Shown: piece by piece, positions 25,451 to 62,629 of the stretch
Layout: each line of letters starts with the position of its first letter
How positions within the stretch are numbered: the stretch's first letter is position 1
Assembly (NCBI RefSeq): GCF_001194135.2
Contig: NC_068988.1
Coordinates: forward strand, 84,254,938 to 84,318,937
Direction of reading: 5' to 3'
Length of the DNA stretch: 64,000 bases
DNA from: Octopus bimaculoides
Lineage: Eukaryota
Notes under the pieces: model-generated
Seen by the model: the letters and a program-made list of their open reading frames with translations, nothing else
The model's database searches: none
What the model was told of the DNA's origin: nothing
Made by a program: the position numbers and the translations under genes

Positions 25451-26789
25451 TTCTAATGCTTTCTCCACCTTTCTTTGAAGAATGTCAGTGGTTGAGTAAA
25501 TAAGGGACTAGAGAAATAATTGGGGCTGATTTATTTTGATCTTGTCTCCAGTGTCTGTGGCCAAGATGCAGTTTCAGTCCATTGAGCAGAAATCAGGTAT
25601 CACACATTGGAACCACTCATCACTTTAAGTAGTGGCAAAGCACTGTAAAATTTGATAAGTGGTTATTTAGCAGATGAGTTTAACTCAGTCTGTGAGTACA
25701 GCTTGTGAAATGGCAGCTATCTCTGTCTTGACTGATTTACTTCTGAGACATACTACATGAATAGGAAGCGATCATAGATGCTTCAGTAAACTAACAGATT
25801 AATGAATTTGCCCACTGTCATCACTTATTTTTGTTGTTCTGTCAGCATTACAACCTACTGTAGGAGCCTCTGTATGCTAGAAATAACAGTCCAATCTCCT
25901 CCATGTCACATCCCGCCATTTGAAAAATTGAGGACACTTTAAATAATGTATCAAAAATGCTTATTCCTGTAAGTAAGACAAAATGGTATATCTGGAAAGA
26001 GTTGATCTTAGGGTCTACTCAGAGTTCACCTAGGGCTAAACAATCACACCCATGGAAGTTAAATGGTGATGTTGGTGCTGTATTGAACTATAAACAGGGT
26101 TTCAAATCTCATTGCAGGTATTTTTGTTACCCATTTGTGGAAGTATACTTGATTCTACAAATCTCAGTTGGCCTATTTGTCTGAGAAATAAGTACAAAAT
26201 CATCTGGGAGTATTTCTTTGATGGTCTAGCATCCTGAGAAACAATTACCCCTTATCTGCTGAAAGACCATGAAACACTTTGACTTGTCCCTCATTCTTAT
26301 AGCTTAGGAAACATTACACTCTGTTACTTTAGATATATTAATTGTATAGAATGATATATGTTGTCTCACTTTAGTTTATTATAATTCTGTGTTGGATGTA
26401 TTGATGCATTCATAGAATAGTATGGTTTCTTGTCTGTTTAACACTAGCAATTATAAGAATAATCGTATTAAATATGTCAATATATTCATATGAAATTAAT
26501 GGAACTAAAACTTGGTGATGGTAACACAGTAGAATGCACAAGATGCTTGCTAACCTCAATTCTTCCTCTGAGTGGTGACCAGAGTCCACTTGGTATCATC
26601 TTGAACTCAGTAATGTTTGATCTCTCATTCACTCACTGCTGGATATACTTGATCACAGAAGGTCTAGAAATTTTCTTGATTACCTTTCAACAGACGAAGG
26701 GTGGGTGATCAAGCTGAAGAAAACCGGGCAGGATCTTACCTTTATAAATGCCTCATTCATTTATGTCTTTTTTTTTTTTTTTTCCCAAG

Positions 26790-41120: not shown

Positions 41121-41793
41121 TGTCAAATATTGTTAGCTACCTTTATAATATATAATAAAAGATTCAGTCATATGAAAGCTATAATTAGTGTTTTTAATGA
41201 ATTTGTAACTGTTGAATGTAAGGAGATGTGTTATCACAGGATTATTGGAAAATGGTTATTGTTCAAAATTTAAGGCATTTTTTTTTTATTCATTCTACTT
41301 CTCATAAAAATGAATTTTATGTATAATAACCTACTAATCCTTTGTTATTTAAAAAAAAAATGAGGTGGTCATGACTGGAATACCTTGGATGACAGTTTTG
41401 TTTGATCGGTGTTCAGGTGTGACCTAAGGCTAAACAGTAGCAGTAGTGTTGAGAACCTTGAAAATATTTCTCATTTCATGCATTTTAAAAATATCTTTTC
41501 AAGTAATTTCCATTGTTTTAAATATCTGCTCTTGTAATATTTAGTATCGTCATCAATGCTTTTCTTACTGGTATGGGTTGGATGTATCTTCACAGCCCAA
41601 TTCTGTTCTTATTCTGAGTTACTGTCCTCTTGGTCAGGTTGAGAACCAGGTCTTGCTCACACATTCCAGTTTTGATATGTACAGAGAGAACTGGGTGCAT
41701 TTTAACATGACACCAATGCTAGAGAAGTTGTCCTGTCTCTGGTAAGGCTAAAGTGTCCTCTCGGCTCTTAAAGTGTACTGTGCACATTGTGTA

Positions 41794-54909: not shown

Positions 54910-55126
54910 CCAACTCACATTGCTGATTTCACTGATGTAGAATCTATCCAGACATTATCTGCCACTTCTGATGACAAAGGTGTATTACAGCTGAAGATAG
55001 CCGGTGCTACAGAACCTTTGACTTTAACCTGTGTGTCTGTAAGTGGTGCTGAAGACATGGCAGATCTTATTGATGGTTATTGTCGTTTGGTCAACAACAC
55101 ACATAGTTCTTTGTGGAAACGAAAAG
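54910..55126 (+). CDS. PTK2: FAK exon H (FERM F3, end of FERM)
   Basis: TTTTTGTAG acceptor, AAG|GTAAGC donor, 217 nt, phase 0-1. PTHIADFTDVESIQTLSATSDDKGVLQLKIAGATEPLTLTCVSVSGAEDMADLIDGYCRLVNNTHSSLWKRK contains the FAK hallmarks LQLKIAGA and ADLIDGYCRL. Confidence 0.95.
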
Positions 55127-55200
55127 GTAAGCCAAACATGGTTTCATTGTAGTATTTACATTTTCAATAATTTATTGTAGTTTTTACAAAACATTCTATT

Positions 55201-55858: not shown

Positions 55859-56768
55859 NNNNNNNNNNNNNNNNNNNNNNNNNNNNNNNNNNNNNNNNNN
55901 NNNNNNNNNNNNNNNNNNNNNNNNNNNNNNNNNNNNNNNNNNNNNNNNNNNNNNNNNNNNNNNNNNNNNNNNNNNNNNNNNNNNNNNNNNNNNNNNNNNN
56001 NNNNNNNNNNNNNNNNNNNNNNNNNNNNNNNNNNNNNNNNNNNNNNNNNNNNNNNNNNNNNNNNNNNNNNNNNNNNNNNNNNNNNNNNNNNNNNNNNNNN
56101 NNNNNNNNNNNNNNNNNNNNNNNNNNNNNNNNNNNNNNNNNNNNNNNNNNNNNNNNNNNNNNNNNNNNNNNNNNNNNNNNNNNNNNNNNNNNNNNNNNNN
56201 NNNNNNNNNNNNNNNNNNNNNNNNNNNNNNNNNNNNNNNNNNNNNNNNNNNTATATATATATATATATATATATATTATAGCAACATCAGTGACATAGTC
56301 TGATATCATTTTTGTGAGATACTATATGTTGACACAGGGTTTCCTTATTTGTACCCAAATATTTGTGCAGAAGAATAGGGCTATGAAATCTCATGTTAGT
56401 ATGAATGGTCGTCTTGAAAATAGTGATGAATAAAGCTTTAAAACTAGAAATTTGTGAAGAAAATGAAAGAAACTGTTAGATATTTACCTTAGCATAAAAA
56501 GGAGAAAGTTTTTCTCTGATTATTTTTAAGCAGACTGGGCTTTCTGGCAACAATACTAGTAACATGCATAATGCTATAAAATTGAATCTCTGTGTGTATT
56601 TCGAAAGTTGATAATGAAGGATTGTGAGAGAAGAAAAGAGGAAGCATATAGGGCAGTGGAAGGTGGAGCAAGAGCATAAATATGATTAGAGAGAAGTTGG
56701 AGGAAATATTACATAGGCTGCTGTGGAGAGGCAAAGAAGAGACACTACATCTACTGAGAAAGAATGTA

Positions 56769-57675
56769 TTGGGTCATGCCATAGATAATGCAGTTTTTTC
56801 AATTGCATGAACTAAAAGTTGGAGGGGGGATGGGATAAACTACCTGCCTCAACTTGCTATAAAAGCAGGTAGTAATTTTACCTTGTATTTATTCTTACTG
56901 CAAATTTTGAAGAGTGCCGTTTCATTTTAAGTTATTTTTTCAAAGCTATAATGGAAGTGACAAAGGAGCATATTCGGCATATTTTGTTGTACGAGTTCAA
57001 TAAAGGTAACAACACAGCGCAAAGTGCAAAGAATATTAATGCAGTATATGGGGATCGCACAATAAGCGTAATCCAGTGTCAAAGGTGATTCCAGAAATTC
57101 TGAGCCGGAAACTACAGCCTAGGAGATGGGGCTCATCCTGGAAGATCTGTAGAGCTTGACGAGGATGTCCTGCAATCCCTAGTGGAATAAAATCCCATCG
57201 TAACTGTTGAGGAATTAGCAGAGAAGTTTGAATTTGGTCATTCAACTTATCATTCAAGTCAGCACCAGAAGAAAAACAACCAATTTTGGTTTCAAGACGA
57301 AAGGTGTTCTTCCATCAGAATAATGCTCGGCCACATACAGTGAGGATGACATTCCAAAGGCTGGAGTTTTTTTGAATGGGACACCATATTCGCCAGACAT
57401 CACCCCATCTGATTATCATTTATTTTGTAGTTTTCAAAATCATTTGGATGGAAAAAATATGAATTCTGTAGACGAGATCAGAACAGTACTGGAGGAGTAT
57501 TTTTCATCACAGACAAGTGAATTTTGGAAGAGGAGCCTTGCAAGTCTACCAGATAGCTGGAAGAACATTGTAGAAAATGAAAGAGTATATTTTAGATTAA
57601 AAAAGAACTTTGTCTTAATTTTGAAAAATAAAAGAATTATTAAAAAAAGACTGCATTATTCATGGGATGACCCAA
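56769..57675 (+). mobile_element. Internally deleted mariner (Mos1/SETMAR-like) transposon
   Basis: TIRs TTGGGTCATGCCATAGATAATGCAG and CTGCATTATTCATGGGATGACCCAA with TA TSDs. From 56951 the HTH region MEVTKEHIRHILLYEFNKGNN... contains stops. C-terminal NNARPH and YSPDITPSDYHLF motifs; the central catalytic region is deleted. Confidence 0.92.
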
Positions 57676-59959
57676 TACTTCATCCAACAGGGTAGGTGAT
57701 TGATAGATACTGCTACTAGGATATACAACATAGCAGAAAACACTTATCATACAACTAAATACAAAGTGCAGTCAACATACCATGTGACTAACAGCATAAG
57801 AAGACAAACCATGTTAGTGTACAACTGTGAGTTTATATGCCATAGATAGAATTTTAATCTATTAACTTTATATATTTTAAGTTATATGAATGTTAAAGTT
57901 TTGATGACTGTAATGACAACATGTAATTCATTTTATTTGCAATTGCATATAAGACAATAAAAGCAGTGATATACATGTATATATACACTTGCATATATAT
58001 ATATGCACACAATATCATGTGTATACTCACAGCATATTAAACTGCTCCTGACTTTTTATTCACCTTGCACGGCAATCACTATCTTTACCTTGGTCTTTTA
58101 GAGTGAAGAGCCTTTCCTTTCAAAGATAATACATTCCCAAAAATTGTGGTTTAGATACCAGATCGTGTTATTTTTATTCAATGTTTAGACAGTCGTAGCA
58201 ACGGTTTTGGACTGTAAATTTGAGCCTTAGGTGCTAAGCCACTAAGCTATACATTTAATTCTACATTGCTTTATCCCACCAAGTTTTCAGGGACAAGTAT
58301 GAAATCATTAAGGGATATCAATGAAGATAGATTGTTATGTCCTAGGGGAGCATTATCTCTCTTCGGCATAATTCTGTGAAACTGGAGCTAAACAAATAGA
58401 TTCTTTTCAGCTCTTTTGGCAGTTTGGAGATATTTTTATTTTGTCATCGGTTGAGAGTTCAAATCTACTTTGGATCTCTTCATTGTTTGTGCAGAACTTT
58501 TAATACATTCCATTCAGTTCACTATAATGTGTGATCAATAGACTGGTGTCCTATCCAGAGGCTGGGTTTGTCAGTGTCTGACCTGAAATCCAAGTAAATT
58601 TATTTGATGTGGTTTAATCTTCATTATCCCTCCTCAATTGAACATAATATTTTCTCTTGTTGATCCAGTGGAGCTCTGGCACAGAAGTAGTTAAGCAAAC
58701 AGCTAGGTGTGATCTACAAACCTATTATTCCAATACCATGCCTCACCCAGTGGAGGACCAACTGTGTACCTCAGCAATCAATAGTTTGTGTAAAGATTCA
58801 GTGTGGTAGTCTGAATTTATTGTATTTTCTTTACTGTCCAGTCTGATTCTGTATGTTAGTAGATTCTGATGGTGACCACAGTGAAAATAGGCTATGTGGT
58901 CTTGATCAGGATACAGCAGTTGTTGATTTACTTCATCAGTGTTTGGGTTTAACGGCATCATTGACGATGACGGCTCAATGGAAGAGACAGTGCTTTTAGG
59001 ATGGTATGTAGTTGTTTTCTAGTGTGTTGTACATGTGTATGAACTCAGTGGGAGTGATTGTGGTGTCTGGATGATATAGGAATGTTGTGGGATTTAGGAG
59101 ATGTCCAGTGAAAGGGAGGGGGGGGGGCATAGTTTTACGATGGTGATATGTGTGTGTGTCTGTGTGTATGTATATATATACATAGATAGATATTTGGACT
59201 GAATGACAGTGTTGTTAGGATGGACTTAGTGTACTGTTCTGCTGTATTATAAATATGTATAGAGGAATGGTGGTTTTAGGAAAGAAGATGTGTCTGGGGT
59301 GTTTTAGGATGATTAAGTTTGCAATTGGAGGTTCTCTGTGACTTGGAGCTTGTGGTAATAAAATGTGACATCCTTGGGTTTTCACTAAAAGATGCAGTCA
59401 TCTTGAAGGTTGTGCTTCAAGTTGAGAAAGGTTATTTTTAAATGTGAATATTGACTATACGTGTTTGTGTGTGTTCTCACAGAAGTTGTATGTATTGTGA
59501 AGTAACCCAGTGTAATTAAGGTTTGGTCTATAAAGTTTTGTTGTGTTCCAATAGGAAGTAGCAGTTTGTAAAGTGGCTTTCCTGTTACTACTTAAGTCAA
59601 ATTCAATAGTCATCTGTCTTATACTCCGGAATTATTTGTTGTTTAGTTCATGGCGGAATGTCCTCTTTCACCATCAAAAATGTTTTACCATTCTATGTAA
59701 TGCTGTTCAGTTGTTAATCATCATCATCATCATCATGAAAAGAAAACCAAGATCAAATTTGTTATTTTTCGCAAGTAAAAAATGTTTTTTTTTGTTCAAA
59801 TGTCTTTTTTTTTCTTTAGATATAAATCTTCTTTTTTTTTGTCATTTCAATTCTTTTGTGTTTCAATTTAAATATTTTAGTTAAGTTTCTTTTAATTTTT
59901 CTTGTTTTTCTTTTTTCTTTTTTTTTTCTTTTTTTCTCCCCTACGTTTCCTATTTGAAG

Positions 59960-59998
59960 CCAACAATTTCAGATGTTCATCTGCCTCCGAAAGTGAAG
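59960..59998 (+). CDS. Candidate 39-nt cassette micro-exon in the FAK FERM-kinase linker
   Basis: About 60-nt pyrimidine tract (59881-59950), then TTTGAAG acceptor and AAG|GTTTGT donor. Length is divisible by 3 and it is open in the incoming phase 1 (ANNFRCSSASESE). A second AG at 59971-72 would give a 26-nt exon. No homology support. Confidence 0.4.
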
Positions 59999-61799
59999 GT
60001 TTGTAAACAGTTATTAATTTCAACTTGAATGTTATTAATTCCTTTTGTAGTCACAAGGTCACACGCTTGCAGGAGAGCAGACATTTCTTTCTCTTTTTCT
60101 TTTTTTGGTTGGTGGTAGAGTGTAGCATTGTAGTTTGATTGTATTAACTCCGCTATAAAACTGGTATCTGGACCTTTATATTAATTTTGTGGGACAACAG
60201 GCAAAGACAACTTTAGTCTGGCATTCTATCGTTTGTGTCATTCAGGAGACCTATCTAGAATTTAAAGTCAAATATTATATGATTTATTAAACGACAATTT
60301 GTATGTCTCTCTAGGTTTTGTAAAATAACAAACACAAAATGGTTAAATAAGCCAACCTTGAAACCATGAAATATCTGCTCCCCAAAATATTCTAGCTAAT
60401 TTTTGTAGCAGCTTTATATGACTTCTATGAATGTCCTATAACCACATAAATCATGAAAGTTTATATTATATCCACTTATTTGAATTGTTCAATCTAATCT
60501 CTCAGAGTAAATTCTATATCTTTCTTTTTTGTTTTTGTTGTTTTTTTTTATAAGACTAACACGAGTCTCTATGGGAATTTATATTCAGTTCCTTGGTTTA
60601 GTCACTATTACAGTCAAATTATCTTCAGCTAGCTCCCTGTTATTTTTATTACGGAGTCAATATGGGCCACTGAGATAACTTGTATATTCTTAACTCAAAT
60701 TGGTCTATATAGTAACCAAATGTATTTTCATCCGACCACTGATCAAATCTACCCTCGTTCAGCTTCTATCCAAATGTACCTTTACTGAATTCCTGACCAA
60801 ATGTACCTTCAGGTTAACAATAAAGCTTAAAACCCTTGCTGGTATTGTTTTTCTACCTTGACATAGGGTTACAAATTTTGGCAGGTGTTGGCAAGGTTAC
60901 AGCCAATTATATCAATCCCAGTATTTGACTGGTACTTTTTCTCAACTTTGGAAGGATAACAAAAAAGCATTGGGCTTTGATTGGATTTGAACTCAGAATG
61001 TAAATTATTCTATCTAGCACCATTCTACTACACCACCCTTGTATTCCTAGTAATAACGAGGAAGATGATATGGTTTCTTATCAAAACACCAGGTTACCTG
61101 TTGAGCAGAAAGGAGAGTGAGTGTGACAAAGTGGAATGCACTGCTCTTTCTCTTTTTTTAATTATCTTATTCCTCCCATCCACAGTTTGAAAGCTTAGTT
61201 TGAATGTCAAGTGTTTGAACTCAAACTCTTGATGGTGGAAGAATTTATTGAAAGATAGCCAAAATACTTTGCAGTAGTATCATATAATTTTCTCTTTATT
61301 TTCTGAGTTCTAATCATAATAGTCAACTTTGGTATTTATTTTCTCAACTTTAGAAGGAGTAAATCTAGTCAAGTACTGGAGCCTATGTAATTAACTATAA
61401 CCTTCCTCAAACAGCTGTGCCCATGGGCTTATGAATGGGGGGAATATGTAAAAAATATCTTCACAGGGAGACTGCCCATAATGTTTCCATGCATTTTTAG
61501 ATTATTAAGACTTATATGACTGATGTCCAGTCTAGATTATCTACAGAAAATAATTGGGCAAGGGGTCTCATGCCTATTATTCTACTGATTCAAGCAATGA
61601 TACGATGAGGTTGATGATGATGATGATGATGTTTGTGATAGTATATTAAAACCACTCCATTTCAGCTCAAAGATGGGTTTAGTTTACTGAGTCTGTTCTT
61701 TAGTATATTACCAGTATTTAGCAATACGGCTCTTATTACTACTCTACTTCAACATATACAATATTTCTGACTAATGCATTATGTTTATTTATTTTACAG

Positions 61800-61830
61800 C
61801 AGATACTATGCCACGGACATCTCGTTCTAG
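61800..61830 (+). CDS. PTK2: FAK linker micro-exon (31 or 28 nt; NAGNAG acceptor)
   Basis: Branch-point-like TGACTAAT at 61768-75, TTTTACAG|CAG acceptor, strong AG|GTAAGC donor. Phase 1-2 reading gives (A)DTMPRTSRS, the same phases as I recall for the short vertebrate EGERALPSIPK linker exon. Confidence 0.75.
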
Positions 61831-62629
61831 GTAAGCATTATTTGAATTTAACTTAAAATTTGACCTGAATATTAACCTAAAATTTACCTACAATTTAACA
61901 TAGCTTAAATATTCAAGTATCATTTGAGATTAAAAGGAATCATGATGATGATTGATTCCTTTTAATCTAAAATTATAATTTACTAATCAATAGGTAACCG
62001 AATAAAAATATTGCTTTATATATATNNNNNNNNNNNNNNNNNNNNNNNNNNNNNNNNNNNNNNNNNNNNNNNNNNNNNNNNNNNNNNNNNNNNNNNNNNN
62101 NNNNNNNNNNNNNNNNNNNNNNNNNNNNNNNNNNNNNNNNNNNNNNNNNNNNNNNNNNNNNNNNNNNNNNNNNNNNNNNNNNNNNNNNNNNNNNNNNNNN
62201 NNNNNNNNNNNNNNNNNNNNNNNNNNNNNNNNNNNNNNNNNNNNNNNNNNNNNNNNNNNNNNNNNNNNNNNNNNNNNNNNNNNNNNNNNNNNNNNNNNNN
62301 NNNNNNNNNNNNNNNNNNNNNNNNNNNNNNNNNNNNNNNNNNNNNNNNNNNNNNNNNNNNNNNNNNNNNNNNNNNNNNNNNNNNNNNNNNNNNNNNNNNN
62401 NNNNNNNNNNNNNNNNNNNNNNNNNNNNNNNNNNNNNNNNNNNNNNNNNNNNNNNNNNNNNNNNNNNNNNNNNNNNNNNNNNNNNNNNNNNNNNNNNNNN
62501 NNNNNNNNNNNNNNNNNNNNNNNNNNNNNNNNNNNNNNNNNNNNNNNNNNNNNNNNNNNNNNNNNNNNNNNNNNNNNNNNNNNNNNNNNNNNNNNNNNNN
62601 NNNNNNNNNNNATATATATATATATACTA

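Follow-up and report, generated by a model that had tools for sequence, protein, structure and literature searches.

A 39-nt coding exon in the FERM-kinase linker of Octopus bimaculoides FAK1 and its likely kinship with alternative cassettes of other protostomes

The activity of the kinase FAK is set by docking of its FERM-kinase linker, and vertebrate neurons alter this docking by means of tiny linker exons. The alternative exons 13, 14 and 16 of vertebrate FAK (boxes 28, 6 and 7) are neuron-enriched; boxes 6 and 7 relieve FERM inhibition, leading to more autophosphorylation, and none of the vertebrate boxes was found outside vertebrates (Corsi et al. 2006, PMC1570463). Does a cephalopod FAK carry a comparable exon, where would it come from, and is it regulated? 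We addressed this question in a stretch of 64,000 nucleotides (nt) from Octopus bimaculoides (contig NC_068988.1, positions 84,254,938 to 84,318,937; hereafter the window, in whose numbering all positions are given), where a sequence-only reading had proposed a frame-preserving 39-nt micro-exon in the FAK linker and had taken it for a possible independently evolved, regulated insert. The 39 nt are a genuine, already annotated coding exon of FAK1 (PTK2), spliced between the donor at 55126 and the acceptor at 61800.

When exons B through H of the window are spliced to the 39-nt exon and to the 31-nt exon that follows it, the product of 322 residues is an exact substring of six of the six O. bimaculoides RefSeq FAK1 isoforms (XP_052826190-XP_052826194 and XP_014777049), and it is likewise matched by UniProt A0A0L8GY73. 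This identifies the window as the FAK1/PTK2 locus of O. bimaculoides. Exon mapping and tblastn, the latter with a human FAK sequence as query, placed the FERM exons in order on the + strand from 12587 to 55126, followed by the 31-nt linker exon. Exon H gave an E value of 4e-21 against the human sequence, and its translation is identical to XP_052826190. In a profile-free scan of 1.8 billion representative proteins, the closest representative was FAK1 of Patella vulgata, at 69% identity. The protein search appears biased to matches of a length near that of the query: exon H alone (72 amino acids, aa) returned single-exon open reading frame (ORF) fragments at ≤70% identity with no cephalopod among the matches, a 349-aa query of the protein collection retrieved no cephalopod, and Octopus proteins were retrieved with a chimeric query of 1073 aa that joined the FERM region of the window to the Patella C-terminus.

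The 39 nt are free of stops in phase 1, translate as ANNFRCSSASESE and keep the frame into ADTMPRTSRS. Precisely this peptide, which the sequence-only reading had predicted for a coding exon following exon H, stands in 6/6 O. bimaculoides and 6/6 O. sinensis RefSeq isoforms, in 5/7 O. vulgaris models and in the 2015 UniProt models. Its description of the pyrimidine tract, the AG, the stop-free 39 nt, the AG/GTTTGT boundary and both flanking exons also proved accurate. It was mistaken in regarding the exon as an unannotated candidate, since O. bimaculoides models have contained it from the first annotation of the genome in 2015 onwards; as a feature the exon is already known, being present in public gene models for O. 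bimaculoides and related species.

Across the three Octopus species, 17 of 19 models include the exon. Both models that lack it are from O. vulgaris. CAI9727206 is without exactly the 13 residues and has a clean KRK/ADTIPRT junction, while CAI9727211 is an aberrant model without either small exon. Skipping of the 39 nt keeps the frame and gives ..WKRKADTMPRTSRS. Because Iso-Seq and RNA-seq data, processed with StringTie, TACO and PASA, underlie the O. vulgaris annotation (PMC10700109), the skipping in CAI9727206 probably reflects a real transcript, though it is a single model. In a cuttlefish cluster formed at 90%, all linker-spanning sequences include the exon (13/13; three Sepia (Acanthosepion) pharaonis models and ten full-length Logan contigs), with TDSCRCSSASESE or TDSFRCSSTSESE as its peptide. 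With the Sepia pharaonis gene extending over ~190 kb, the Logan contigs of ~4-4.7 kb must represent spliced mRNA; the range of the O. sinensis gene is 210 kb. Conservation in other cephalopods, which the sequence-only reading had named as a check, is borne out for the peptide, which recurs in O. sinensis and O. vulgaris and, with differences at its start, in the cuttlefish cluster. The same sets of models vary at a downstream basic cassette of 14 residues, and the lack of variation at the 39-nt exon is therefore informative. In cephalopods the exon looks mostly constitutive, with inclusion as the default and skipping at most a minor or regulated event.

The nucleotide differences between octopus and one mRNA of the cuttlefish cluster (L006; overall protein identity 76%) bear on whether the exon is translated. 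The last nine codons (RCSSASESE) show four synonymous third-position differences and no non-synonymous one, while the first four codons differ (ANNF in octopus, TDSC in L006). This pattern, though drawn from a small sample, is what a translated exon under constraint should show.

Could the exon have been called from its splice signals (Table 1)? The intron holds 261 frame-preserving open AG..GT segments of 9-90 nt, and three of them, one being the 39-nt exon, match or exceed its scores at both sites. Splice signals alone are therefore not decisive, and the exon call rests on outside evidence. The scores come from a crude position-weight matrix built on vertebrate frequencies and are only approximate; on this scale the GTTTGT donor scores 0.7, the weakest among the gene's donors in the window, the others scoring 2.0-7.6. 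The tract ahead of the acceptor is the top-scoring 75-nt pyrimidine stretch on either strand of the whole window and includes the window's longest unbroken pyrimidine run (38 nt, 59905-59942). It contains TCTT five times, TTCT six times, TCTC once and TGC not at all. The AG-free zone before the acceptor measures 72 nt (59886-59957), which is within the range of 34-153 nt for the gene's other exons. The lone YTNAY-type motif suggests a candidate distant branch point at TTAAT.

Table 1. Positions of the exons and splice signals around the 39-nt exon, with post-FERM cassettes of other protostomes
Feature	Position	Strand	Description	Models with and without
39-nt coding exon	59960..59998	+	phase 1-1; encodes (A)NNFRCSSASESE, residues 427-439 of O. 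bimaculoides FAK1 X1/X2
3' splice site AG in use	59958..59959	+	ttgAAG/CC; weak, A at -3 and C at +1; boundary KRK/ANNF.. needed by the annotated proteins
5' splice site GTTTGT	59999..60004	+	AAG/GTTTGT; weak, T at +3 and +4; the gene's other donors in the window all have A at +3
U-rich polypyrimidine tract	59881..59955	+	88% pyrimidine (53 T, 13 C)
TTAAT, YTNAY-type motif	59892..59896	+	candidate branch point, ~64 nt ahead of the AG; no other such motif in the 100 nt before the acceptor
Alternative CAG acceptor in the exon	59970..59972	+	tttCAG; would yield a 26-nt frame-shifting exon; acceptor score -5.2
FAK exon H, last FERM F3 exon	54910..55126	+	ends ..DLIDGYCRLVNNTHSSLWKRK plus G; phase 1; donor gtaagc
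Constitutive 31-nt micro-exon	61800..61830	+	(A)DTMPRTSRS(S); phase 1; counterpart of the PR1/ALPSIPK Src-SH3 motif
Haliotis cassette			31 aa, ..YLSWNSYDSDDEGEATCSE	yes
Gigantopelta cassette			19 aa, AILSWNSYDSDDDDTESSE	yes
Oyster cassette			18 aa, ASMDWQLSV[DE]EALTRLEK	yes
Mytilus cassette			16 aa, AGIEWVPLNDTKPSRK	yes
Pomacea cassette			18 aa, DCPSWNAYHSGDERDRSE	one model with, one without
Insect cassette			AA[SIV]WK[NHR][YF]PCPC..	with and without in Neodiprion virginianus and Macrosteles

An alternative acceptor inside the exon had also been put forward, with the product DVHLPPKVK and an echo of the vertebrate ALPSIPK linker. We rejected this acceptor, which shifts the frame, scores poorly and is used by no model of the three Octopus species or of the cuttlefish cluster. 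The echo was misplaced as well: the true counterpart of ALPSIPK is DT[MI]PRT[SP] of the 31-nt exon, whose DTMPRT HMMER aligned with ALPSIPK of chicken FAK (2J0J/2J0K sequences). The genomic counterpart of the 31-nt exon in Patella vulgata is also exactly 31 nt long (about 41256-41286 of the Patella sequence; GDTIPRTPIA), and D[TS]IPRTP is kept across molluscs. In O. bimaculoides the motif reads MPRTSRS, without the second proline, and in cuttlefish-cluster sequences and most other molluscs it reads IPRTP. The acceptor of the 31-nt exon, acagCAG at 61797-61802, is a tandem (NAGNAG) site whose first AG is used in all models; use of the second would drop the alanine (SE/DTMPRT).

Two further features of the gene and its surroundings touch on the splice signals. 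FERM exon B likewise has an AAG acceptor (26787-26789), behind a run of 18 T, so the 39-nt exon is not alone in this gene in pairing an AAG acceptor with a strong pyrimidine tract. A T-rich low-complexity region extends over ~59780-59955, far longer than a normal pyrimidine tract, and a perfect (ATC)6.7 microsatellite lies at 59717-59736, ~220 nt upstream of the exon. We considered the tail of a repeat element as the source of both tract and exon and rejected it: the window has no second copy, and the structure is a simple T-rich tandem one.

What do the 13 residues contribute to the protein? In an AlphaFold2 model of isoform X2, built on an alignment of 52 sequences, the FERM domain is confident to residue ~427, including the C-terminal helix of F3 (398-416) and a short strand at 423-425, and the predicted local distance difference test (pLDDT) score is below 50 at residues 428-464 and 469-490. 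The drop in confidence places the 13 residues at the opening of the disordered linker. In all likelihood the exon encodes a disordered spacer, acidic and rich in serine, that separates the FERM domain from the docking motif for Src SH3. Serine with an acidic residue at +3 is the consensus of CK2. We speculate that the 13 extra residues would lengthen the disordered tether that joins lobe F3 of the FERM domain to the Src-docking segment (proline-rich/DYAEI); SSASESEAD would add acidic CK2-type serine sites, at which charge could rise in a graded way. By either route the insert could alter docking of the linker in the autoinhibited kinase or the ease of recruiting Src, which is recruited jointly by PR1 (via SH3) and the phosphorylated linker tyrosine pY397 (via SH2) (PMC6025627). 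At the RNA level, the weak AAG acceptor and the weak GTTTGT donor may be offset by the unusual length of the U-rich tract, and the branch point is probably a distant one. Such a layout would leave inclusion open to control, and pyrimidine-tract binding proteins are a reasonable guess for the controlling factors.

Other protostomes provide the comparison that bears on the origin of the exon. In genomic DNA of Patella vulgata, the same intron contains an 87-nt exon of phase 1-1 with AG/GT boundaries, which encodes 29 aa (DDTLPLRKAYISLNYDSDDEGEDTSSDSE) and ends AGTGAAG/GT like the octopus exon; the 31-nt exon lies 4.5 kb further on, and Patella isoforms are known with and without the 87 nt. As genomic mapping in Patella and comparison of protein isoforms show, the octopus exon shares both intron and phase 1-1 with cassettes of molluscs and insects (Table 1). 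The cassettes of other molluscs and of insects have 12-31 residues and open with A-x-x-W-[N/Q/K]. MAFFT aligned the F/C-R of cephalopods (ANNFR, TDSCR and TDSFR) with W-[NQK] in the other taxa; the conserved tryptophan core is not found in cephalopods, which have F or C in place of W. Position, phase and the weak shared motif make orthology of the octopus exon with this protostome post-FERM cassette likely. Extra post-FERM residues also occur in the nemertean Lineus (..WKRK ATRTRHFSLE GESLPRTP) and in chelicerate models (VCLWKARS.. and ANFWNPPEF.., from Centruroides and Nymphon), so the cassette may predate what the mollusc-insect comparison shows. A text search on Fak56 splicing found nothing relevant.

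The origin and the regulation of the exon each admit other readings. The exon could have arisen independently in cephalopods by exonisation in a long phase-1 intron, its location alone being shared with the other cassettes. The absence of tryptophan, the shortness of the exon (13 residues, compared with 16-31 for other molluscs) and the low complexity of the shared tail leave little similarity to the W-type cassettes, and cassettes from different mollusc classes are themselves very unlike in sequence (compare AGIEWVPLNDTKPSRK of Mytilus and ..SWNSYDSDDEGE.. of Haliotis). Against separate origins, the intron and the phase 1-1 are identical in gastropods, bivalves, cephalopods and insects, the A-x-x-aromatic-[NQKR] opening is common to the cassettes, and octopus and Patella have in common the tail S[DE]SE, continued across the junction by G or A and D-T-[IM]-P-R-T, as well as the DNA end AGTGAAG/GT. 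We therefore regard independent exonisation as possible but doubtful. The proposal of an independently evolved insert holds in one part: vertebrate boxes 6 and 7 occupy other junctions and are not homologues of the exon. As a claim of lineage-specific invention the proposal is wrong or unproven, given the same-intron phase 1-1 cassettes of gastropods, bivalves and insects.

With regard to regulation, the simplest alternative is that this is a plain constitutive cephalopod exon, that the skipping model of O. vulgaris is an artefact or splicing noise, and that the tract compensates for weak sites without a regulatory role. Inclusion in 6/6 O. bimaculoides and 6/6 O. sinensis isoforms, in the 2015 models and in 13/13 cuttlefish-cluster sequences, in sets where the downstream basic cassette varies, is what such an exon would give. 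It fits less well with an O. vulgaris model, based on Iso-Seq and RNA-seq, that lacks exactly 13 residues at a clean KRK/ADTIPRT junction, with clearly alternative splicing of the same-intron cassettes in many other molluscs and insects, or with an AAG acceptor combined with the weakest donor of the gene in the window. We put this reading somewhat short of even odds. At the other extreme, the exon might be a neuron-enriched micro-exon of SRRM/eMIC type that tunes FAK autoinhibition, a functional analogue of vertebrate FAK+6,7. Exons that depend on eMIC have UGC near the 3' splice site, weak 3' and 5' sites, a long pyrimidine tract and a long AG-free zone (Torres-Mendez et al. 2022, PMC8797185). 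The octopus exon is short and frame-preserving, encodes part of a disordered linker and combines weak sites with a long tract and a 72-nt AG-free zone, and the homologous vertebrate kinase has neuronal linker micro-exons (PMC1570463). However, that AG-free zone is ordinary for this gene, UGC (TGC in the DNA) is not found in the 160 nt upstream of the acceptor (59800-59959), where UCUC occurs once, and the Rbfox motif GCAUG is not found within 500 nt of the exon. Its 39 nt also exceed the 3-27 nt that literature abstracts give for the neuronal microexon class, it lies upstream of PR1 and not beside the autophosphorylation tyrosine, and near-universal inclusion in models from mixed-tissue data speaks against tight neural restriction. 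An eMIC-type neuronal exon is, on balance, improbable.

Our preferred reading, to which we assign a probability of about 0.8, is the joint one: an annotated FAK1 exon, a shortened cephalopod form of an old protostome cassette, included by default and acting through the RNA- and protein-level mechanisms proposed above. Its length is divisible by three, as in a cassette that can be skipped in frame. Of the seven O. vulgaris models, five include the exon, one skips it and one is aberrant. Several points weigh against this reading. The case for orthology with the W-containing cassettes is built on shared position and phase, on a serine/acid-rich tail and on a motif of five residues whose W is replaced in cephalopods, and the MAFFT alignment is anchored by conserved flanks around cassettes of low-complexity composition. 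Skipping in cephalopods amounts to one O. vulgaris model, with none among 6 O. bimaculoides, 6 O. sinensis and 13 cuttlefish-cluster sequences, and splicing of the exon could therefore just be constitutive. Inclusion in O. bimaculoides is taken from annotated models, and the tether-length/CK2 mechanism is a conjecture.

A second cassette, outside the window, extends the picture to another junction of the linker. This basic cassette (G..SRRKK..) lies between DYS[TI]PD and [RK][DN]YEI, the vertebrate box-7 junction; examples are GENLCVSRRKKDTKP in octopus, GKSNTLRNSKKRKS in Patella and GPLGSRRRKK in oyster. Isoform comparison suggests that molluscs and insects also splice the FAK linker alternatively, at two junctions, the post-FERM and the box-7 junction. 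We venture, tentatively, a broader scheme in which the octopus exon would be a truncated orthologue of an ancient post-FERM cassette, common to protostomes at least, that forms, with the basic cassette, an invertebrate linker-splicing system tuning autoinhibition or Src recruitment, and in which the exon would be tissue- or stage-regulated in cephalopods.

Some observations concern the remainder of the locus. Assembly gaps (runs of N) occupy 55859-56251, in the intron ahead of the 39-nt exon, and 62026-62611, just past the 31-nt exon. In the window we did not find the next linker exons (SIQQSSG.. and RLSDYAEIVEEEGDYSIPD), which could sit in the second gap or past 64000. When the window was scanned for a Y397-like exon, the only matches were a chance one near 57336, within a transposon-like ORF, and a frame of the 31-nt exon that runs into a stop. 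The DYAEIV exon is located either past the end of the window or inside the gap at 62026-62611. The intron also contains a 107-aa ORF with PYSPDITPSDYHLF (57372-57695, +), which we take to resemble the C-terminal part of a Tc1/mariner transposase and which had no Pfam hit. Read-through past the exon H donor (55127-55150) gives GKPNMVSL and then a stop in O. bimaculoides. In O. vulgaris CAI9727211, GKPNIVSLN is followed by the SIQQ exon with both small exons skipped, maybe an alternative donor or an annotation artefact. Literature searches turned up no publication on the 39-nt exon or its function. A degenerate DNA pattern for the exon matched nothing in the metagenome collection, and a related-locus scan of that collection returned only relatives at ≤65% identity.

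Alternative cassettes at two junctions of the invertebrate FAK linker, apparently conserved over great evolutionary distances, are a moderately interesting by-product of this analysis. A protostome linker-splicing system, if true, runs against the 2006 view of FAK linker alternative exons as a vertebrate innovation. Should orthology across phyla hold, the cassettes would offer a simple case, open to testing, in which splice control of kinase autoinhibition has been deeply conserved or has evolved repeatedly, and an entry point to whether cephalopod nervous tissue uses the exon.

How does the exon compare with known systems? In the vertebrate isoforms that we retrieved, box 6 (DEISGD) stands between ..VSVS and ETDDYAEI and box 7 (KSYGIDE) between TYTMPS and RDYEI; in salmonid models, box 28 comes directly ahead of box 6. 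The octopus exon lies upstream of the PR1-like motif, two exons ahead of the DYAEIV exon, and not at the junctions flanking the Y397 exon. Direct comparison of its peptide with DEISGD, KSYGIDE and box 28 revealed no visible similarity. Judged by its place in the sequence, the exon is unrelated to boxes 6 and 7, because the insertion junctions differ. Boxes 28, 6 and 7 resemble it in being short, in keeping the frame and in falling within the disordered FERM-kinase linker of this kinase, but they flank the Y397 exon, whereas the octopus exon precedes the PR1 motif.

The octopus exon resembles SRRM4/eMIC microexons in several ways: its splice sites are weak, its pyrimidine tract and AG-free zone are long, it keeps the frame, and it encodes part of a disordered protein region. 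It differs in its length of 39 nt versus 3-27 nt, in having no UGC near the 3' splice site and in having almost no UCUC. With the protostome post-FERM cassette it shares a place after the ..W.[RK]K exon and before the PR1-like one, phase 1-1 and a length divisible by three, together with an A-x-x-aromatic-polar opening and, as in gastropods, a serine/acid-rich tail. In contrast to the other mollusc cassettes, the cephalopod exon is shorter, at 13 aa, has no tryptophan and is present in nearly all models.

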